In this document: one piece after another, positions 2,226 to 63,840 of the stretch
Layout of the letters: each line of letters begins with the position of its first letter
Position numbering within the stretch: position 1 is the stretch's first letter
From: Euprymna scolopes
Lineage: Eukaryota
NCBI GenBank assembly: GCA_053919585.1
Contig: CM132828.1
DNA length: 64,000 bases
Direction: 5' to 3' (one strand)
Made by a program: the position numbers and the translations under genes
Notes under the pieces: generated by a model
Database searches by the model: none
What the model was told of the DNA's origin: nothing
Seen by the model: the letters and a program-made list of their open reading frames with translations, nothing else

Positions 2226-2470
2226 GTGAAAAGCCACATTCTGGTGAAGTGACACATATGAGAACTCACACTTAGGAAAAGCCACATTCTTATAAAGTTT
2301 GTGGATATTCTTTTTCTCACAAATCAAATTTTGTTAGACATAAGAATTCACCGGTGAATTATTAATGTAACTAATGTGGATATTCTTATTTTAAAAATCG
2401 AACTTTAGTGATTCATGAGAAAAAACACACTAGTAATAAAACTATTTTCTTGCAAACCGTGTGCATAGGA
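2226..2470 (+). pseudogene. Degenerate C2H2 zinc-finger array remnant
   Basis: GAAAAGCCACATTCT (EKPHS), CATATGAGAACTCACACT (HMRTHT), TGTGGATATTCT (CGYS), with stops and indels; same codon usage as 52777-53475. Confidence 0.85.
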
Positions 2471-48544: not shown

Positions 48545-48936
48545 ACCAATTTTATGACGTCTGATATTTTATATGTTACATAATATCAATTTATAACTTC
48601 TTTTCAATTTGCACAATTTTTTAATTATTCTGTAAAAACTCAAAACCAATTTTATGACGTCTGATATTTTATATGTTACATTATATCAATTTATAATTGC
48701 TTTTCAATTTACACAATTTTTAATTATTCTGTAAAAACTCAAAACCAATTTTATGACGTCTGATATTTTATATGTTACATTATATCAATTTATAATTTCT
48801 TTTCAATTTGCACAATTTTTTAATTATTCTGTAAAAACTCAAAACCAATTTTATGGCATCTGATATTTTATATGTTACATTTTGTCAATTTATAACTTCT
48901 TTTCAATTTGCACAATTTTTTATTTATTCTGTAAAA
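48545..48936. repeat. ~100-bp tandem repeat, ~4 copies
   Basis: ACCAATTTTATG(A/G)C at 48545, 48645, 48744, 48844. Confidence 0.92.
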
Positions 48937-51237: not shown

Positions 51238-51765
51238 GTTTTTGATATACAAATATATATTTTCAGACGTTTATTTAAAAAGTAATTTTTTTGGTATACA
51301 AATATGTATTTTCAGACGTTTATTTAAAAAATATTTTTTGGGTATACAAATATATATTATCGGACGTTTATTTAAAAAATAAATGTTTTGGTATACAAAT
51401 ATATATTATCAGACGTTTATTTAAAAAATAAATGTTTTGGTATACAAATATATATTATCAGACGTTTATTTAAAAATAAATGTTTTGGTATACAAATATA
51501 TATTATTAGACGTTTATTTAAAAATAAATGTTTTGGTATACAAATATATATTATCAGACGTTTATTTAAAAATAAATGTTTTGGTATACAAATATATATT
51601 ATCAGACGTTTATTTAAAAATAAATGTTTTGGTATACAAATATATATTATCAGACGTTTATTTAAAAAATAAATGTTTTGGTATACAAATATATATTATC
51701 AGACGTTTATTTAAAAATAAATGTTTTGGTATACAAATATGTATTATCAGACGTTAATTTAAAAA
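51238..51765. repeat. 49-50-bp minisatellite, ~10-11 copies
   Basis: TTTGGTATACAAATATATATTATCAGACGTTTATTTAAAAATAAATGT repeated. Confidence 0.95.
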
Positions 51766-52776
51766 CAATTAAAATAGCAATGCATTCAAAAGGATTGGAT
51801 GAAATAATTCGTTGAATGTAAAAAATGTGTTGTATAAAATTCAATATGAGTTTTAACAAATGTGACTTGAAATGAAAGCTACCTTAAAAGACCATATTAT
51901 TATCCATTGCTAAGTAACAAGATTATATACTGATTTAGATTAGAAATTTAAAAAGTATGTAAATTCACTTTCCTGTATTATAAAACTGTTATATTTCTAT
52001 TAGTAGCAATATATTTTTATTATTATCAGTAGATACTATGGTGGTTGTATGCTTATTGTTCCTACAAATTATTACTATATTATTGTTTATTTTACTTTAT
52101 TAATTGCATAATTCCTTTATCTATTATAAAATACTATGAATAGTATTTAACATTTAAACAATATGAATGTGAGTTAATGTGTTTATTTGTGTGATTTTTA
52201 AATGTTTTATAATGTTATGTTGCTTGTTTTGTTGACAGGATTAAAATAAATAATGATATTAAAATAATTAATTTCATTTATTTTTTATTTGCAGATGTTC
52301 CTGCTTGAATGTTTTAATGAATATTAAGGGACCACCCTTCTCCTTAAACAGTATACTATACATAATTATTATTATTATTCTATAGACAATTATTTCCTTA
52401 CGTGGCAGAAAACAAAAACGTCTGCACACGACTTTATTAAACACATATGTGTGGAGAGTTATTTTATCTGGATTGTTTAGCAAATAGCGATAAGAACATC
52501 ACACATACTTACATTTGTGAAATTTGTGTTTAATGTGTTTATAAATCATAAGATATCGAATTTAACATTTCAGAAAAATCTGCTAATTTAGAAAAGAGGA
52601 TATTTTAACTTTTAAACTACGAAATATCTCATATCACAAAAATGAAAAGTGATACACAATTAAAATTTATTTAGTATTAAATTGAGCTTGCATCAACAAC
52701 TCCAGATCAAAACTGAAAAAGCAGGATAAAATGTCATTGTTAATCACTTGGTAGTGATAATCTTGTTAATTTAAAT

Positions 52777-53499
52777 ATGAATATGCAAGACAGGGGAAAG
52801 CCATATTCTTGTACAGTATGTGGATATTCTTATTCTAAAAAATCAAAATTAGTGATTAATATGAGAACTCACACTGGGGAAAAGCCACATTTTTGTGATG
52901 TATGTGGATATTCCTGTTCTGATAAATCAAAATTAGTGAGACATATGAGAACCCACACTGGGGAAAAGCCACATTCTTGTGAAGTCTGTGGATATTCGTG
53001 TTCTGATAAATCAACATTAGTGACACATACGAGAACTCACACTGGGGAAAAGCCACATTCTTGTGAAGTATGTGGATATTCTTTTTCTGTGAAATCATCG
53101 TTAGTGGTACATATGAGAACACACACTGGGGAAAAGCCACATTCGTGTAAAGTATGTGGATATTCTTATCCTCAAAAGTCAAAATTAGTGATACATATGA
53201 GAACGCACACTGGGGAAAAGCCACATTCCTGTGATGTATGTGGATATTCTTGTTCTCTTAAATCAAATTTAGTCATACATATGAGAACTCACACTGGAGA
53301 AAAGCCACATTCTTGTGAAATATGTGGATATTCTTGCTCACGAAAATCAAACTTAGTTGTACATATGAGAACTCACACCGGGGAAAAGCCACATTCTTGT
53401 GATGTATGCAGATATTCTTGTTCTGATAAATCAAATTTCGTGAGACATATGAGAACTCACACTGGGAAAAAACTAGGAGAGAACTTGAATGCCTACTAG
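52777..53499 (+). CDS. Tandem C2H2 zinc-finger protein (8 fingers, first degenerate), truncated by a SINE-like insertion; possibly a last exon or a young pseudogene
   Basis: 240-aa ORF with C-x2-C-x12-H-x3-H fingers and TGEKPH linkers; the last residues GENLNAY* come from the inserted element. Confidence 0.8.
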   Translation: MNMQDRGKPYSCTVCGYSYSKKSKLVINMRTHTGEKPHFCDVCGYSCSDKSKLVRHMRTHTGEKPHSCEVCGYSCSDKSTLVTHTRTHTGEKPHSCEVCGYSFSVKSSLVVHMRTHTGEKPHSCKVCGYSYPQKSKLVIHMRTHTGEKPHSCDVCGYSCSLKSNLVIHMRTHTGEKPHSCEICGYSCSRKSNLVVHMRTHTGEKPHSCDVCRYSCSDKSNFVRHMRTHTGKKLGENLNAY

Positions 53500-53991
53500 C
53501 CACTGTCTTCGAGTGTCTAAGGTCTCTCTGTACAGGGGTTTGTCAGAACAATCTGACATGAGGATACTTTTTAAATAGAAGTAAACTCTGATAAAATATT
53601 CAAAATCACATAGTATTCGCTGCCCAAATAAGATCTTCTCACTATGGCTACCCCACAGTATTTTCCGAGGAATGGTGCACCTTCTCCAGGTGATATTACC
53701 TCAAACAATAGCACGAAGGTAGATACTGCACCAGACTAGATAAATTCTTGTCCTGGAATCCAGTAAGACCAAGAGACCAAAATAAAGGTATACTACAATG
53801 TATAAATATGGTTAATTGGGGAGAGGAAAATTATGTTCTCAACTTCTTTATTAACTCAGCGTTTGAGAGATAAAGAACTTAAATGGAATATTTGAATATC
53901 TATGTATCTCCTATAGACTTCAAGTGTTAGCCCCAGGTTGTGGGCCCCTTGATTTCTGAGAACTTCGACTGAAGTAAAATAAAACAAAAAA
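53476..53991 (+). mobile_element. Non-autonomous SINE-like element, copy 2 (apparently full length, ~520 bp), inserted in a TGEKP linker
   Basis: Left flank CACACTGGGAAAAAACTA, right flank AAAAAAAGCCACATTCTTGT; aligns end to end with the reverse complement of 62722-63241. Confidence 0.9.
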
Positions 53992-53997
53992 GAAAAA

Positions 53998-54489
53998 AAG
54001 CCACATTCTTGTGAAGTGTGTGGATATTGTTTGTCTGGAAAAGCAAAGTTAGTTATACATGTGAGAACTCACACTGCGGAAAAGCCACATTCTTGTGAAG
54101 TGTGTAAGTATTCTTGTTCTGAAAAAGCATCTTTAATGAGATATATGAGAACTCACACTGGGGAAAAGCCATATTCTTGTGAAGCTATCAAAAATCAGGG
54201 TTAGTCACACATATTAAAACTCACACGGGGGAAAAGCCACATACTTGTAAAGTGTGTAGATATTCTTGTTCTCATAAATCAAACTTACTAATACATATGA
54301 GAAATCACAAAAACCATATTCTATGGCGAAAAACAATATGCTTGTGAAGTGTGGGAATATTCTTGTTCTCAAAAATCAATGTTAGTATTACATATGAGAA
54401 CTCACACTGGTGAAAAACCACATTGTTGTGAAATGTGTAATTATTCTAGTTCTGACAAATCAAATTTAATGAGACACATGAGAACTCAC
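53998..54489 (+). pseudogene. Continuation of the ZF array (~6 fingers) with deletions and frameshifts
   Basis: KPHSCEVCGYCLSGKAKLVIHVRTHTAEKPHSCEVC..., deletion at ~54186, ends CEMCNYSSSDKSNLMRHMRTH. Confidence 0.88.
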
Positions 54490-55077
54490 TAAGCAATAAC
54501 AACAATTGCTGGTTCTGCCACACTTAAGTAGACATCAAATTATTAAGTGGAGAACGGCTTCTAAACAATGTGACACGAAGGAGTGTGTAAATATTTCCAT
54601 GCGAAAATCTGTAAAAACTGAATATCCAATGTAGTAACAGTTGGACATAAGTTATACATCGTCCATTGTGACTACGAAATTCCTACAGCTACACACCCAG
54701 ATGATATTGATATGGTATAAGAGGGAGAAAGTAGCGAAAGTGTAAGTAAGCGTCCCTAATGATGCTGGCCTTAACAAAAGAAAATAATAAAATATCAAGG
54801 ATTTATGTATGACATGAAAAGAAACTGGAATATTAAGACGATCTTAATCATTCTGTCATTATACAAGCTACGGAACAAGAATTTTAAAAACTATCTTGCA
54901 AATATATCTGGTGAACCATGTGCAAGAGAAATACCAATAATTGCACTTAAATGGACGGTTAGCATCTTAAAAAGATCTCTCAGTTAGAGTAACAAAACTA
55001 ATGAGAGAATGTTTGGCATCTGGTGGAAGGCTCCAGTCCCAAGAAAAACAAAGTGATGAGAAAATTAGGAGATAAAA
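54489..55077 (+). mobile_element. Degenerate 5'-truncated R4/Dong-like RLE non-LTR retrotransposon inserted in a ZF linker
   Basis: LSNNNNCWFCHT (zinc knuckle start), HEGVCKYFHAKICK, VSVPNDAGLN, KIIKYQ, and NFKNYLANISGEPCAREIPIIALKWTVSILKRSLS*, which aligns with NLPKYLEAIPGRPSCNEIQIAAIKGTVSILKRALG at 63313-63440. Confidence 0.82.
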
Positions 55078-55370
55078 AAACGCATTCTTGCAAAATGTGT
55101 GTCTATTTTTTGTTCTAAATAATGAAAACTCAACATTAGAACAATTTGTGAGTATTCTCTTTTTTTTAATAATGAAAAGTTATGAAAACATATGAGAACT
55201 CAACACTGGAAAATTCATATTTTAGAACAATTTGTGAATATTCTGTTTTTTTTATAATCAAGTTCATTGATGCATATGAAAATAACACAAATAGTAAAAG
55301 ACATTTTTACAAAATATGTTTCTAGTCTTATTTGAAGAATTTGCATTTATTTATATGAGAACTTCAAACT
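55075..55370 (+). pseudogene. Highly degenerate ZF remnants after the RLE insertion
   Basis: AAAACGCATTCTTGCAAAATGTGT (K-[P]-H-S-C-K-M-C), CATATGAGAACTCAACACTGGA, TGTGAATATTCT. Confidence 0.65.
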
Positions 55371-55526
55371 AGACAAGATTACATATAACACACTTGAAAT
55401 GACTCATGATTAATGCAACAATTCTAAATGAATATTGTCATAATAAAGAGAAAAAGAGAATAATATAATATTAGTAAATAAATAATCACAAAGAATATAA
55501 TTGAGTGCAACTGAAAGAAAAGTCAC

Positions 55527-56605
55527 AGACATGGAATAAAACTATATAATAATATATATTTGTGTTATAGTGTTTTGTTCAAAAGAAGATGTATTTCTTG
55601 TAAGGTAAAAACCACCAATAGAGCGAAGGTCAATGGGATAAGGTATGTTTCCCTTTTGTGTGATGTGCAATGCAAAGATGTCTATTCGTCATGTAAAAAT
55701 AACTGTCTCGCATACGGTTCTTGTTCCGGTTGTAAACAATGTTGATATGTGTATCCACCCACACAGGGAAACCCACAGACGCTGTATACTAACAAAGTAG
55801 AAAAGAAAACATTATACATACATTAATAGATAAATTTACAAGAACACGGTTACATAGACACAATACAACCTGACACATACATATGCACGTTATGTATATG
55901 TATATACACACCAGTATACTACAACGCATGCTCTTACCTGTCCCATGGCCTACTAATATGTACAGTCGAACATGTCACATTAGAGATCACTTTTCTTATG
56001 TGAAAATTGAAATGAGAAAAAGGGAAGTGATTCAGGTCAGATATTAACTGAAATAATGATTAATGAATTCTATCTACATATGTTAATGTCAAGACATGGA
56101 ATAAAGCTATATAATAATATATATTTGTGTTATAGTGTTTTGTTCAGAAGAAGATGTATTTTTTAAGGTAAAAACCACCAAGAGAGCGAGGGTCAATGGG
56201 ATAAGGTATGTTTCCCTTTTGTGTGATATGCAATGCAAAAATGTCTATTCAGTCATATAAAAAAATTGTCTCGCATACAATAGTGGTTCTGGTTGTAAAC
56301 AATGTTGATATGTGTATCCACCCGCACACGGAAAACCACAGACGCTGTATACAAACAAAACAGAAAAGAAAACAATATACATACATTAGCAAATAAATTC
56401 ACATGAACACGGTTACATAGACACAATACAATGTGACATGTACATATGCACATTATGTATATGTATATACACACCAGTATACTACAACACATGCTATTAT
56501 CTGTCCCATGGCCTACTAATATGTACAGCCGAACATGTCACATTAGAGATCACCTTTCTTAGATGAAAATTGAAATGAGAACAAGGGAAGTAAATCAAAG
56601 GTCGG
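55527..56605. repeat. Two direct copies of a ~510-bp sequence (period 565 bp)
   Basis: AGACATGGAATAAA... at 55527 and 56092; collinear through ...GAAATGAGAA(A/C)AAGGGAAGT with scattered substitutions. Confidence 0.92.
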
Positions 56606-57098
56606 TTGTAGTCAGCTGGAAAGCAGTCAATCGGAAGAGAGTTCCATATGCGTGCAGTTCTAAGAAAGAAGCTTTTTTTCATTGAATATACATTTAGGTT
56701 TAGGCACAGATAAAGAGGGTGGGAAATTATTGCTAGTGGTTTTTGCTAGACAAGTTGTTTTCGTGAAGGTTTGGCAAGGGGGACCATATATTGAAGCTCA
56801 GATTAGCACTTGCCATGAAAATAACGATGAAGCAGAGCCAGCCTCGTAACGTCTCTTCTGTAGGAAAGAGGTTGCAGGGAAGAGAAACTGGCATCCCCCC
56901 ACTAAGCTACGAAGTCTTTTCTGGCAGCTCCTGATGTGGATTGTATGTATCTGGCTTTTGAATTTTTCAGCAACTTTGGCAATGGATTTGATATACATGT
57001 TCCATTTCAAATCCAGAAGCTTGTCAAAACATGAAGGCTCCCCAAGGCGAGAGTCGTTCATTTCAATTGATGCTAGATGGGCATCAGATCGTTGATGA
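56606..57098 (-). mobile_element. Degenerate CR1/L2-group LINE fragment
   Basis: KKSFFLRTARIWNSLPIDCFPADYN and LDLKWNMYIKSIAKVA; collinear with 940-1560, with deletions. Confidence 0.85.
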
Positions 57099-57619
57099 TT
57101 TACAAAAAAGAACATGAATATAATGGTTGAAAGTAAAATAAATTGATTTTTACTCTGCCACATTTTTTTCACTTTGCAACATAATCATTAAGTGTCATTT
57201 TTTCTTATTATATAAAACATAACAAAATCAGTAAAAATTGTAAAAAAATAAAATAAAGATTAATATTCAACACTGGATTTTAATTTTTACCGATTGCTAA
57301 AAATTTACACGAATCTTTTCTAATTTCATCTGAAGAAATGTTTTACTTGTTATAAAATATATTCATAACACTTTTTGTTGCAAATTTACATATTTTTTCA
57401 ATGGAGAATAAGTTTTCATTTTTTCTGCCTGTTGTTTTTATTTTGCGTCTGTGTGCTACTGTGCATAGCTTGCTTTATGTCTGAGTGTCCGAGCAAAACA
57501 CGTTGAGGGTTTTAACAATTCACTATAATATATATACAATTCACTATAATATTCTGCTATGGTTGGAACTAAAAGGAAAGAAAAATGGAAAAGAGCATGA
57601 ACGGTACGTTTGCTCCAGC

Positions 57620-58290
57620 GATGCAGTTTGGTCTGAGTTGTTAATGCAGCTGTGAGTCGATGGTGAAAGCTCTCTACCATCCTGTTAGCAGAAGGATGAT
57701 AGGCGATTGTTGCTATGTGAGAAATTTTGAAGGATTGGCAAATATCTCAGAAGGTTTGTTATGTAAACTGGGAACATCTGTCAGTGGTAACAGTCTTGGT
57801 ACACCAAAGTTAGAGATCCAGTTCTCTACACTGCCGGAAAGAAGATGTGGAATTTGTCTATCCGTTTTTATGTTCTGCTTGCTTGTAAATGCAGGGTTAC
57901 TCGCATTTGCGTGAATCATTCCTGAAAAGACGATGGGAATAGCACCAGGTAGATTGTGAGATCTGAATCTTTGCAATGAGCGTTTGTCTTCATAATTTCA
58001 TGTAGTTGGGCCGTGATTGTTTATCCACTACCAGGGATTTAATTGCGTTGGTCAAGGCAGCAATTTCCGATAATTCCATGCTGGAGTTGGATGCGGAGTC
58101 TATAGCAGCATATTGTGTCCCAATAGTGGTTACAACTGATACGAGGTGGTAATTGTTGTCGATGCGGTCGGCGATAACCATTAATTGTATCGGATCCCCA
58201 ACGAACATGGACAGCATGTGGGATAATTGTGGAGGCAGTTTTACCAAAGCTGATGTAAGATATTGTCGTTTATCGTGTGTGCACCGGTAG
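57620..58290 (-). mobile_element. Second, heavily deleted Gypsy remnant (gag-like and integrase fragments)
   Basis: KLPPQLSHML...LMVIADRID (gag-like); ENWISNFGVP and MVESFHHRLTAAL resemble integrase WISRFGVP and GMVERFHRQLKAAL. Confidence 0.65.
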
Positions 58291-59092
58291 GTATATCAGA
58301 ATTTTGGGGGAATTTTTGACACCCCTAACACAAAATTGCAAATAAAATATAAAAGAAACTCGTAATTTCTCTTTTAAATGTGAGTTGTTTATTTTCTTTA
58401 TGGATTATACTTCCAAAATAAACTATTAAAGTTGTATAAAACGTATTATAAATATTATTTTTTTTAAAACAGAAATGAAATTAATTGAATTTTACGAGTA
58501 CAGTATTTTTAAATTTTTAAATTTTAAAAATCTATCAACATTTTTCTATTGATTCAATTTCTTACGATATTTTCAGGATCAATGTGAAATTTTAGTCTCT
58601 TTCCAATAAACCTAATATAATATTTTAGACAAACGTTACTTTTTAACTCACGCCCCCAATTTGAAATGTCTATTAAAAAGTGAATAATTAATTTACTCAC
58701 CAAAGTTTTTTTTTATATCACAAATTGAAGATAAAAATCAATATATTCAAATTTAAAACAAAAAAAGAAGCGTTTATTTAGAAATTTTCATGTAAAGTCC
58801 GAAATTTAAAACAGGAAAAAGGTTACAACACATGATTAGACATGGATGCTGAATCTTGGTGTATTTATCGCTGTCACAGAGGAATACAAAGTTATTTTGT
58901 GTGGAAAAGCCTCATTTTGTTTGGTATGATACTCGGTATACGGAATGAAAAGTGTTTAACGTAAAGTTTTGTAAGTCGAGGTCGAAGGTCACTAATTGTT
59001 GCGCGGCCATATAAAGCATGTTCACAACTTAGTAATAAGAAAAAACATTATACCTGTATATATATACAAAACTATAAAACTATATCATTTAA

Positions 59093-59359
59093 NNNNNNNN
59101 NNNNNNNNNNNNNNNNNNNNNNNNNNNNNNNNNNNNNNNNNNNNNNNNNNNNNNNNNNNNNNNNNNNNNNNNNNNNNNNNNNNNNNNNNNNNNNNNNNNN
59201 NNNNNNNNNNNNNNNNNNNNNNNNNNNNNNNNNNNNNNNNNNNNNNNNNNNNNNNNNNNNNNNNNNNNNNNNNNNNNNNNNNNNNNNNNNNNNNNNNNNN
59301 NNNNNNNNNNNNNNNNNNNNNNNNNNNNNNNNNNNNNNNNNNNNNNNNNNNNNNNNNNN
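59093..59359. other. Assembly gap (267 N)
   Basis: N run. Confidence 1.
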
Positions 59360-60714
59360 ACAAAACAAAGGGGCATGTGCATAGAGTGGTGCACTAATTT
59401 GGTAGTCACATAAGGACATGTGATTGTACGTGTTGACCTCTGTGGAGATGTGTACACATGTTATAGTTCATATTTTACATGAGCGATTTATAGATTTATT
59501 ATACTAGTCTTGAATTGTTCATACTGTGTTAAGTCTGCGTGTAAGAATCTTATAGGTAACAATGTTTATACATGATAAATGCAAACCTTACCTTTCACGA
59601 TGATGCATGTTTATGGATCACGCAAATTTATGTGTGCACTGCTTGATGCCAAGCGAGAGAGGAAGAAGGAAACGGCAGGCTATGTCAGAGGTCACAGGAA
59701 ATGCACGCGTATCAGTCATGTCATGTTTGCACGTGCCCCACTCCGTGCGTGTGTGTACTACGGCACGCAGCTTTCTCTGTGGCTGTGCGTTTGATCTAGA
59801 CAAAGCAAATTTGCGGCAGGTGTAACGGTTCCTATTTACAATGCCTCCCCACGGGACAGAGTTAGACACCAGGATCGTTTTTTAATGTGGAGAAAAGGAA
59901 CAAAAATAAACATTGACTCAGTCGTGAAGGATTTCTCCTCCACTGACAGAGAACAAGAAATTGAAGTGCAACATCTGAAGACCAGCTACAACGCTTTGAT
60001 TTTGTCCCGAAGCCCAAGTTTTCTATAAATGAATTAAGTTACTGATGTCAAAATTAAATGTTAATTTTATTCGGAGTTCATAAAAAAATAAAGTAAAAGA
60101 AATGTAAATATTAATAAACTGCTGAATACTTGTCTTTAACAAAGTTGTCTCTAGCAATATCTAAAAATATAAACAAGTTGACTTTAACAGATGAAACAAT
60201 AACTAAAAATATAAACAAGGCAACAAGATTTCATGATATTTTTTAATCTTTTATTATGTGGATAACAAATATTCATTAGTTAAAAAGGCAAAAACACACA
60301 ACATATAATATATTTTATCTACAATAGTTTTGATACAAGTAATTCCAAAATATTCAGAGTCCTTCTGCACCAGTTGATTCACCGACATAAATTTATATCC
60401 CTAGGTTATTTTAGATGCAACTTACCTTTTGTTCATATTATATATAAAGTACGTATTAGTATTGCATTGTATATCGGTAAATGATATTATGTAGAAACAA
60501 CCTTTTTCAGGTTTTTATGTAGCTCGGTGACATGATGATAATGAATAATTCATAAGACGACACTTTTGTCAGTTATCTTAAGTGATATTCTTACAGGGAA
60601 AGGCTGTAACAAAGAAGTATATTAGTGAAGTGAAAATGAGATAAGGATCAGCCGAGATTCGAACCTTGTAAGCAAAGTTAAGATTTGGAATGTTAGAATT
60701 TAGTCTATTGTTTT

Positions 60715-61377
60715 ATTCTATTAGAAATTGATATTGTTTATATCGTAAAAAGAATTCATAGTTAAATTCTATTAGAAATATATATTGTTTATATTGTAAA
60801 AAGAATTGATTGTTAAATTCTATTAGAAATATATATTGTTTATATTGTAAAAAGAATTGATTGTTAAATTTTATTAGAAATAGATATTGTTTATATTGTA
60901 AAAAGAATTGATTGTTAAATTCTATTAGAAATAGATATTGTTTATATTGTAAAAAGAATTGATTGTTAAATTCTATTAGAAATTGTTATTGTTCATATCG
61001 TAAAAAGAATTGATTGTTAAATTTTATTAGAAATTGATATTGTTTATATCGTAAAAAGAATTGATTGTTAAATTCTAAAAGAAATTGATATTGTATATAT
61101 CGTAAAAAGGATTGTTTAATTCTATTAGAAATTGATATTGTTTATATCGTAAAAATAATTGATTGTTAAATTCTATTAGAAATAGATTGTCTTTATATTG
61201 TAAAAAGAATTGATGGTTAAATTCTATTAGAAATAGATATTGTTTATATTGTAAAAGGAATTGATTTTTTAATTCTATTAGAAATAGATATTGTTTATAT
61301 CGTAAAAAGACTTGATTGTTAATTTTATAAGAAATTGATATTGTTTATATATTTATATCGTAAAAAGAATTGATTGT
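60715..61377. repeat. ~51-bp AT-rich minisatellite, ~13 copies
   Basis: ATTCTATTAGAAATAGATATTGTTTATATTGTAAAAAGAATTGATTGTTAA repeated. Confidence 0.93.
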
Positions 61378-61471
61378 ACATTCTTTTCGAATCGGAATAT
61401 TAAAAATGTCAGCTGAAAGAATGAACAATACACATTAAAAATATAATATTTAAAAATAGGTTAGAGTTATA

Positions 61472-61801
61472 TGTTGATTATTCTTTTGTTATTAAAAGTG
61501 TGTTTCGAAAACGTAGGCATAGTCACGTGAATTGGCACGTTTGGAAAACACACTTCTGACGTCATAGAAATCGGGGATTCTAAATATAGGAGCTAGAGTA
61601 TGTCAGATCAGCGGGGTTGAAGAGTTGAGTTAGCAGTTGAGTTGGATTGAGTTGGCGTCAGTCGTTTGGTAGCGAAGGAAAGAACACCAAACAATGTAGA
61701 TCCAAATTTGAATTCCTGACGTCATCATCATTCGACCGGTTCGATGAATAAAGAATCATCATTTTGTTTTTGTAACTATTGTCATGTGTCATATTTCAAC
61801 A
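61472..61801 (+). mobile_element. Possible solo LTR (330 bp)
   Basis: Inverted ends TGTTGA...TCAACA, TATA-like TAAATATA at ~61581, AATAAA at ~61747, less AT-rich than flanks; no target-site duplication seen. Confidence 0.4.
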
Positions 61802-62204
61802 CTCAAAAGTTAATGTGTTAAACATATTATTATGAACATTGTGTAACCATTACAAGAATATGTATCTTCCTCCATCTGTGTTATAAGAATTGTGCATCCA
61901 TCACCCTATCACCCTCCTCTCTAATATGCATGTTACAAGGAAACATCCCCCTGTTATAAATGTCTTGTCTCCCTCATCGTTACTAGCATGTAATATGAGT
62001 CCCCAGTTATATATGACCCCATTAATATGAACACCAATATGAAACCCCCATCTGCTATATAACAACATTTCCGACGTGAGAATTTGATTAAAGCACTTCA
62101 TATATTTTAATATTTGATTGGTTTTCTATGCAGGAATTTGTGATATTAGAATCGATCCAACAATATATTTTACATTAGACTATATTCTAGGACGATCGAT
62201 TTCT

Positions 62205-62721
62205 TCGAGGAACACTCACTTCAACCAAGGTTTCAACTCTTTCTGAGTTATTTCATATAACGCTGTCAGGTTTCACAGAAGAACTTTCAAGGTAGCTGGT
62301 TGTAGAGATGACATGATCGTAATGTATGCATTCCGATCATGTCATCTCTACAACCAGCTACCTTGAAAATTAGTCATTTAAAACTGTTCTTTCAGGTTGA
62401 GGTTCCCAGGATTTGCTGCAAAATTGTTTGATTCTTAACAGATGGTCCAGTGGATGGACTTACAAACTATCGCATGTCTCATTGTGTAGTAGCAATCCCT
62501 AAAAGAACCTGACAACTTGATACTAGATGTCTCACACTTTTTAATTCCGTGTGACAGAATCTAAATTTATTGTCATTACTGAGACCAGTCATCTTCTTTA
62601 ATGCATTGGTTACAAATCCTTGTTCCTGAGAAGCCATTATAACCCTTTCCTTATCGTGATGGAGGGCTTCCCTTTTGAGCCTGTCCAAGGAAGCTTTTTT
62701 GTCTATTGTGGAAAGCTCCCA
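62205..62721 (-). mobile_element. Degenerate R4/Dong-like RLE retrotransposon fragment (zinc knuckle to start of RLE)
   Basis: IDKKASLDRLKREALHHDKERVIMASQEQGFVTN...FRFCHTELKSVRHLVSSC, RHAIVCKSIHWTIC, WEPQPERTVLND, then KPDSVI*NNSERVETLVEVSVP at ~62205-62272. Confidence 0.82.
62285..62368. repeat. 84-bp near-perfect palindrome (35-bp perfect arms)
   Basis: TTTCAAGGTAGCTGGTTGTAGAGATGACATGATCG and its exact reverse complement flank TAATGTATGCATTC. Confidence 0.95.
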
Positions 62722-63241
62722 TTTTTACTTTTTTGTTTTATTTTACTTCGGTCGAACTTCTCAGAAGTCAAAGGGCCACAACATGGAGCTAACACTTGAA
62801 CTCTATATGATACATAGATATTCGAATTTTCCCTTTAAGTTCTTTATCTCTTAAACACAGAGTAAAGAAATTGAGAACATAATTTTCCTCTCCCCAATCA
62901 AGCATTTTTATACGTTATAATATATCTTTTATTTTGGTCTCTTGGTCTTACTGGATTCCAGGACAATAAATTATCTAGTCTGGTGGAGTATCCAGCTTCA
63001 GGCTATTACTTGAGGTAATATCACCTGAAGAAGGTGCACCATTCCTCGTAAAAGCTAATCTAGGTTAGCCATAGCGAGAAGATCTTATTTGGGCAGCGAA
63101 TACAAAATGTGATTTTGAATATTTGGTCAGGGTTTACTTCTATAGAAAAAGTATCCTCATGCCAGGTTGTTCTGACAAACCCCTGAAAAGAGAGACATTA
63201 GACACTCGCGGATAGTAACTACTATGCATTCAAATTCTCTC
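62722..63241 (-). mobile_element. Non-autonomous SINE-like element, copy 3 (full length)
   Basis: Reverse complement starts GAGAGAATTTGAATGC and ends GAAGTAAAATAAAACAAAAAAG, as in copy 2. Confidence 0.9.
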
Positions 63242-63725
63242 TTTTTATTTAGTTTACTTCAGTATCTTTTAAGAGATCAAGGGCTCCCTTTTGGAGCTCA
63301 CACTTGATGCTGTTATGATTTAAATTTATATCCGAGGGCTCTTTTAAGAATAGATACTGTTCCCTTTATGGCTGCTATCTGTATTTCATTACAGCTTGGT
63401 CTTCCAGGGATTGCTTCTAAGTATTTAGGAAGATTCTTTTTTATTAACCCAGTTGCTCCTATCACAACCGGTATAATGTTTATTTCTTTCAGAGACCATG
63501 TCGTTTTTAGATCATTTTTAAGGTCCCAATATTTTGTTATCTTTTCCCGTTCAGCTCTGTTAAGGCCGAAATCATTTGGGACTGTAACATCGACAATGAA
63601 CGCAGTTCTTTCAGGCTTGTTCCATATTACAATATCTGCTTTGATGGCTTTGTTTCTTATGTATCTGCCTGCCTGTATATCTTTGTCATAGAACACGGTC
63701 ACATTTCCATTTGATGTTATTGGTG
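63242..63725 (-). mobile_element. 5'-truncated R4/Dong-like RLE non-LTR retrotransposon (open endonuclease domain, 3' UTR, A-rich tail)
   Basis: YDKDIQ...IKADIVIW...IVDVTVPND...EREKITKYWDL...IIPVVIGATG matches the PD..D..P..K..KY RLE signature; stop at 63313; tail TAAACTAAATAAAAA. Confidence 0.9.
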
Positions 63726-63840
63726 GCCAGTGTGCGTTCTCATAACGTTGATTTTCTAGAACAGGAATGTCCACAAGCTTCACAAAAATATGGCTTTTCG
63801 CCAGTGTGAGTTCTCATATGTGCCAATGAATTTGATGTTA
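63726..63840 (-). pseudogene. C2H2 zinc-finger remnant fused to the RLE element
   Basis: Minus strand CATATGAGAACTCACACTGGCGAAAAGCCATATTTTTGTGAAGCTTGTGGACAT ([18 protein letters not shown])...ATGAGAACGCACACTGGC, then LINE sequence. Confidence 0.88.

Follow-up and report, generated by a model that had tools for sequence, protein, structure and literature searches.

Preferential occurrence of restriction-like endonuclease retrotransposons at the C2H2 zinc-finger linker in Euprymna scolopes

Insertions at zinc-finger linkers in the window

The DNA considered here, referred to as the window, is a stretch of 64,000 nucleotides from Euprymna scolopes (G000:C46:168516001-168580000, in a genome of 5.9 Gb) in which C2H2 zinc-finger (ZF) sequence is interrupted by retrotransposons. 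These are long interspersed nuclear elements (LINEs) with a restriction-like endonuclease (RLE), for which the labels LINE-A and LINE-B were coined, and a shorter element first described as a short interspersed nuclear element (SINE). Where they lie in ZF sequence they occupy one position of the linker and have the sense orientation of the ZF, in the window as well as elsewhere in the genome. The window holds a single ZF array of 84-bp period, at 52772-54489 on the plus strand, and two ZF remnants.

The first part of the array (52772-53473, +) consists of 84-bp units with HTGEKP linkers, as shown by a TRF period of 84, a ZF motif scan and the BLAST map. It lies 5′ of SINE (a), a full-length non-autonomous element (53476-53991, +) with tail, head and middle homology to LINE-A, which splits a linker and is flanked by the 7-bp target-site duplication (TSD) GAAAAAA at 53466-53472 and 53992-53998. 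The array is resumed at 53996-54489 (+) with partly decayed fingers, traced by motif scan, TRF and BLAST map, and is followed in a linker by copy (b), a degenerate 5′-truncated LINE-B-type copy (54490-55080, +) with CCHC and RLE remnants, an A-rich tail and BLAST similarity to LINE-B over 54704-55080. Copy (b) is flanked by ...ATGAGAACTCAC and AAAAAACGCATTCTTGC. On the opposite strand copy (c), a 5′-truncated LINE-A with an open reading frame (ORF) for an RLE domain homologous to R2 structures (63242-63726, -), begins immediately 3′ of ATGAGAACGCACACTGGC (...CACACTGGC) and is thereby joined to the linker ...CACACTGG of a ZF remnant at 63727-63839 (-; BLAST map). The tail of copy (d), a 5′-truncated SINE (1830-2219, +), ends at 2219 and adjoins GTGAAAAGCCACATTCT, with GTGAAAAGCC belonging to a decayed ZF remnant recognised downstream at 2226-2452 (+) by ZF motif scan and BLAST map. 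All four linker insertions of the original prediction were thus confirmed, and each element of the window lies on the strand of its neighbouring ZF. Copy (c) is present with its flanks at three genomic loci (L031-L033), copy (a) at two (L001/L002), and the four cases of the window are therefore not all unique events.

Stacked directly behind the tail of copy (c) is a further SINE copy (62729-63241, -), and behind this a LINE-B-type fragment (62208-62706, -) with the CCHC knuckle FCHTELKSVRHLVSSC. At 62294-62362 the LINE-B fragment is interrupted by a near-perfect palindrome (ggtagctggttgtagagatgacatgatcg...cgatcatgtcatctctacaaccagctacc) with arms of about 35 bp each. Between 55081 and 62207 no similarity to ZF, LINE-A, LINE-B or SINE was detected in the BLAST map. 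This interval holds an assembly gap (59093-59359), which is part of no feature used and is spanned by no junction or reading frame in the argument.

Identity of the elements

LINE-A, the family of copy (c), has a length of about 4.6 kb and shares 55% identity with LINE-B, the family of copy (b), across the C-terminal 215 amino acids. The ORF of copy (c) together with longer natural copies (L084, L055/L063 and L045/L062) encodes a reverse transcriptase (RT), matched by Pfam RVT_1 in L084:5487-7205 with E=1e-28. C-terminal to the RT follow a CCHC knuckle (CRFC...H....C), in which a conserved R lying between the first and second Cys agrees with published data (PMC5678591), and a restriction-like domain of PD-(D/E)XK type with KPDIV...IDVTV...EK..KY. 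In phmmer searches against the PDB, where R2 is the only RLE-LINE represented and R4, Dong, NeSL and Hero are absent, R2 proteins were the sole matches, collinear in both cases, for the RT-linker region (E=1e-25) and for the CCHC and RLE region (9nl2, 9nl3 and 9dou; E=5e-8), with KPD..DVTV..EK..KY aligned. Pfam gave no Exo_endo_phos match, the mark of an apurinic/apyrimidinic (APE) endonuclease, in the regions upstream of the RT, no match to the RLE ORF alone and noise only in the N-terminal pieces. Myb-like W..EE.. strings were seen by eye in the N-termini of L087 and L084, again with no Pfam match. The combination of RT, CCHC knuckle and R2-like endonuclease, with APE lacking, identifies LINE-A and LINE-B on sequence criteria as RLE-type non-LTR retrotransposons, in agreement with the original prediction. 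The R4/Dong affiliation also proposed for these candidates is plausible, and 'Dong-R4' LINEs are reported to be abundant in cephalopods (PMC8967140, PMC13282606).

In L061:6645-7370 a zinc finger (..HMRPHTGE) is continued in the same frame by the LINE-A CCHC and RLE region, the resulting open frame of 241 amino acids being a potential ZF-nuclease fusion ORF.

The short element was found to be built from LINE sequence, with bases 1-129 resembling the LINE-A 5′ untranslated region (UTR), bases 152-298 the N-terminal coding region and bases 445-516 the 3′ UTR, at 67-82% identity. No tRNA-like structure was found in its head by ARAGORN, and the element with its flanks matched no ribozyme or small-RNA family in Rfam. 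A SINE transcribed by RNA polymerase III was ruled out because the head has no tRNA, 5S or 7SL character and is homologous to the LINE-A 5′ UTR. By its sequence the 'SINE' has arisen from a related LINE through internal deletion, as the homology of its three segments to both ends and part of the coding sequence of LINE-A shows, and it resembles the short internally deleted elements (SIDEs) of R2. The claim of a dependent SINE therefore stood as far as a non-autonomous element sharing the LINE ends is concerned, and failed as to its SINE nature.

Junctions, copy numbers and transcripts

At the 3′ junction of linker insertions an A-run is followed by GNGAAAAGCC, and at the 5′ junction of full-length copies CACACTGGNG is followed by AGGACTTGAATGCC, LINE-A heads starting with (G)GAGGACTTGAATGCCTACTAGATACC. 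Full-length LINE-A heads directly 3′ of CACACTGGNG were found in L105/L111/L113/L136/L137, representing one duplicated event, in L112/L135/L138, representing a second, and in L107 and L109/L110. These 5′ and 3′ sequences therefore place the insertion point between ACTGGNG and AAAAGCC of the linker, in ZF-sense orientation and with a short duplication ranging from GNG to about 7 bp. The linker target may also be written as CACACTGGNGAAAAGCC or, as duplex, CACACTGGNGAAAAGCCA. In L061 and L062 single arrays have received two or three separate insertions (LINE-B, SINE and LINE-A), all of them in linkers and some spaced by exactly one finger. L063+L055 was rejected as a full-length copy, being 5′-truncated and present at least 10 times, as was the likewise 5′-truncated L084, the true head being found only in L105-L113.

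In a sample of 20 tails off C46 the 3′ flanks mostly begin with G(T/G)GA. The dispersed off-target sites have only G(K)GA at the 3′ junction in common, in many cases preceded by ..ACTG or (CA)n. Where SINE copies have clean TSDs, ..ACTG|G is frequent upstream (L009, L029 and L003), and several copies adjoin (CA)n or (TA)n microsatellites.

Insertions at the edge of a (CA)n microsatellite outside ZFs were seen in L134 (C31:30633575-30633680), L014, L025 and L122, one of them a full-length LINE-A, and (CA)n may be a secondary target, since it resembles the CACAC that encodes His-Thr ahead of the linker. The first approximately 22 nt of the element (GGAGAGAACTTGAATGCCTACT, or GGAGGACTTGAATGCCTA..) are often present in 2-4 tandem copies at the 5′ junction, in SINE copies L006-L008, L016, L019 and L022 and in LINE-A copies L112, L135 and L138, for which template switching at the 5′ end of the RNA is a possible explanation. 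One 5′ truncation point, AGCCAGTCAAGACC..., is common to three independent loci with unlike flanks (L037:1253, L043:1253 and L060:1253, and also L061:6710), and may be a truncation hot spot or an alternative RNA 5′ end.

Copy numbers were determined as exact pattern matches in the whole genome. The linker 14-mer ACTGGNGARAARCC occurred 30,791 times against 569 for a control, corresponding as 84-bp units to about 0.04% of the genome. The LINE-A tail 21-mer gave 247 matches, and in 80 of these it was followed after 0-4 nt by GNGANNNNCC (G-N-G-A-N4-CC), nearly all as G[AGTC]GA[AG]AA[GA]CC, a pattern that undercounts stacked or decayed junctions and includes a few chance or SINE-tail (GAGAGAAACC) matches. 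Joined to GTGANNNNTG, which represents the second GTGA site of each ZF unit, in the Cys-Glu codons, the LINE-A tail was found twice, neither time in a ZF, and joined to the antisense linker not once in the genome. For the SINE, with 2,521 tails, 264 were followed by GNGANNNNCC, about two thirds of them clearly linker-like by reading, which gives approximately 7-10% linker-joined tails. These SINE-linker junctions cluster at C27:105-115 Mb, at C19:117-123 Mb and on C46. The claimed sense orientation was borne out by all of about 40 element-ZF adjacencies in the studied loci, and linker insertions in this orientation are far beyond chance. No ZF sequence was present in 77 kb of flanks around non-ZF SINE copies, and since copies in non-ZF DNA carry no ZF repeats, these repeats are not part of the element, an alternative that the original prediction had raised.

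A stretch of about 100 Mb on C46 (~117-214 Mb), apparently a huge and heavily duplicated ZF-array region, holds 72 of the 80 linker-joined tails and almost every long LINE-A copy, and among the first 100 LINE-A tails listed (contigs C1-C34) 5 fitted the junction pattern. One truncated copy recurs at least 10 times (L064-L072 and L075), and two insertions account for 7 of the 9 full-length heads matched exactly in the genome. Collapsing duplicates among the 30 best LINE-A loci left 21 independent sites, 17 with ZF at one or both junctions, 2 without and 2 ambiguous. The 5′ truncation points vary (locus positions 552 to 1501), ...CACACTGGNG is nonetheless found upstream in 14 of the 17, and the 3′ flanks are ZF linkers of different fingers. 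Pairwise identity was 96.9% between LINE copies and 64.8% between their 100-bp 3′ flanks, and the divergence of the host fingers hence greatly predates the elements. Repeated independent insertion at one linker position, as originally predicted, was thereby supported, and descent of all copies from a single ancestral insertion was not, while many ZF-flanked copies did prove to be segmental duplicates.

In poly(A) RNA-seq (X22-X24) sense-strand coverage reached a depth of about 300 for LINE-B and about 5-19 for LINE-A, and some reads pass from the LINE-B tail into ZF sequence. LINE-B-type 3′ regions in L061:5600-6635 were well covered in the same RNA, with a strong sense bias and a depth increasing toward the 3′ end. 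Over the full-length 5′ junction of L105 only low-identity paralogue reads were obtained, which are uninformative on 5′ ends or co-transcription at this locus.

The first approximately 130 nt of LINE-A and SINE share a conserved predicted fold, which one added pseudoknot converts to a topology resembling that of the hepatitis delta virus (HDV) ribozyme. The predicted P1 pairs GGNGAGG or GGAGAGA with UCUCUCU, including a G1.U wobble, and its 5′ strand starts at the linker GGNG; the predicted P2 pairs UUGAAUG with YAUUCAA, P3 is extended and has a loop with CCUCG, and P4 and J4/2 (CAAA) complete the model. The nested double pseudoknot (P1, P1′, P2, P3, P4) had 98.6% of cells paired against 30-47% in slid controls, the structure having been derived from the sequences scored, and three compensatory pairs separate the LINE-A and SINE lineages. 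The 5′ head is hypothesised to be an HDV-like ribozyme, in which the start of P1 at the linker GGNG would put cleavage at ACT|GGNG. Many R2 ribozymes build P1 from upstream 28S target sequence (PMC3774820), and the predicted position of P1 at the linker suggests that the elements may be co-transcribed with ZF genes.

Mode of insertion and related systems

The most probable explanation is that an RLE non-LTR lineage comprising LINE-A, LINE-B and the deletion derivative inserts by target-primed reverse transcription (TPRT) with a strong sequence-directed preference for C2H2 ZF-linker DNA. The hallmarks of TPRT are present in the A-rich tail, the variable 5′ truncation and the short duplication, and a short motif is common to on-target and off-target sites. 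Approximately 30,000 near-identical linkers would offer a multicopy 'safe' niche comparable to the rDNA for R2. The extended motif (~CACACTGG|NGAAAAG) could be recognised by the protein, through its putative Myb-like N-terminus and its RLE, by the 3′ end of the RNA pairing with target DNA, or by the two in combination. Copies in sense orientation would be co-transcribed with ZF genes, the candidate ribozyme would free the element RNA at ACT|GGNG, and segmental duplication of ZF arrays on C46 would multiply the resident copies.

A broader proposal, offered tentatively and held to be somewhat more doubtful than probable, is that an R2-like lifestyle has moved from rDNA to a protein-coding family. 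The TGEKP-linker codons would serve as home, the elements would be transcribed as passengers of ZF genes, the linker glycine codon would contribute P1 of the ribozyme, and truncation, pseudogenisation and duplication seeding would drive the turnover of ZF arrays.

Several observations weigh against a linker-directed insertion mechanism. Of the 247 LINE-A tails 167 lie outside ZFs, as do about 90% of the SINE tails, and in a random sample of 20 tails off C46 (15 LINE-A and 5 SINE-type) just 1 was in a ZF. Most copies are thus not flanked by ZF, the finding that the original prediction itself had named as contrary to it, and its claim of sequence specificity in the sense of R2 and R4 was not upheld. 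Since most copies are dispersed, the choice of target amounts to a strong preference whose position and orientation are exact, and falls short of the exclusivity of R2. Of the linker-joined LINE-A tails, 75 of 80 are on C46 or on the unplaced contig C336, which are rich in duplication, so that independent linker events number considerably fewer than 80. In the top-40 BLAST sample 81% of the copies were ZF-flanked against 32% in the census of exact tails, and the BLAST sample may favour longer copies. In 3 of about 9 pairs (L036, L049 and L063+L055) the N of GNG on the 5′ side did not agree with that on the 3′ side, and a simple TSD model is therefore incomplete. Protein-based recognition of the linker is a prediction from sequence, and the candidate ribozyme fold lacks an Rfam match and was scored on the sequences that yielded it.

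The mismatched GNG hints that one motif copy was RNA-templated, as would be expected if priming were guided by homology, read-through RNAs with a downstream linker annealing to other linkers and priming RT there, and poly(A)-ended RNAs landing at random A/G-rich sites. Such priming would account for the mixture of on-target and dispersed copies, and the RNA-seq reads leading from the LINE-B tail into ZF sequence are of the kind it requires. The exact position and the G(K)GA preference hold, however, at non-ZF sites without homology, SINE copies with ordinary TSDs indicate an endonuclease-type choice of site, and no read-through cDNA beyond a few bases was seen at the junctions, which leaves homology-guided priming rather unlikely. 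Amplification with the arrays of a few chance ZF insertions, in the absence of any preference, agrees with the locus recurring at least 10 times, with the descent of most full-length heads from two insertions and with identical junction strings repeated up to about 12 times on C46. As a sole cause it is nevertheless largely refuted and highly improbable, given at least 17 loci with distinct truncation points and distinct ZF flanks, LINE copies 97% alike against flanks 65% alike, linker insertions on C19, C23 and C27 as well, and 80 sense linker junctions against 0 in ZF at the other GTGA site and 0 at the antisense linker. Random insertion followed by survival in ZF arrays, often decayed and probably insertion-tolerant, and by purging elsewhere can be practically dismissed, as single-nucleotide precision and 100% sense orientation exceed what selection can produce and most copies do survive in non-ZF DNA.

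The elements share with R2 the RT-CCHC-RLE architecture, the fixed orientation in a conserved multicopy target and the frequent 5′ truncation, as well as a candidate HDV-like 5′ structure with P1 partly in the upstream target, as in many R2s (PMC3774820). They differ from R2 in the protein-coding target instead of rDNA, the partial specificity, the A-rich tail and the ribozyme, which here is predicted and without Rfam match. R4, found in 28S rDNA, and Dong, found in (TAA)n, are also RLE LINEs with repeat-directed insertion, here paralleled by (CA)n and (TA)n as possible secondary targets, but the ZF linker does not figure in the list of targets reported for such elements (PMC5035012). The 'SINE' parallels the R2 SIDEs (PMC3414825) in having retained the 5′ end of a LINE with the candidate ribozyme region, part of the N-terminal coding sequence and the 3′ end; it differs in its identity of only 70-82% to LINE-A and in having at least 2,521 copies, far more dispersed than those of its LINE relatives. 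NeSL and Utopia, inserting in spliced-leader and U2 snRNA genes, respectively (PMC4640811), similarly occupy a conserved multicopy gene in fixed orientation, but their targets are small RNA genes as opposed to a repeated codon string within protein-coding exons.

Targets reported for such elements comprise rRNA, tRNA and snRNA genes, microsatellites, telomeres and transposons (PMC5035012). Searches of the available literature found no published LINE targeting a ZF linker, in line with the original prediction, which named no described case, and a conserved codon string in a protein-coding multigene family would constitute a new target class. In a genome in which the ZF family is greatly expanded, the element lineage could have a share in how ZF arrays arise, are lost and duplicate. 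Vertebrate C2H2 ZF genes are best known as repressors of transposons, and the familiar relationship would here be reversed, with a transposon preying on ZF genes. For gene-insertion technology, furthermore, RLE elements are of interest when their recognition of targets is programmable or unusual.

The window also contains repeats with no evident part in these insertions. More than half of it is occupied by a satellite of 35 kb (5858-41300), with approximately 210 copies of a 169-bp unit at 99% identity and no obvious ZF similarity. AT-rich tandem repeats were found at 60707-61350 (51-bp units), 51240-51765 (48-bp units) and 48545-48936 (100-bp units).

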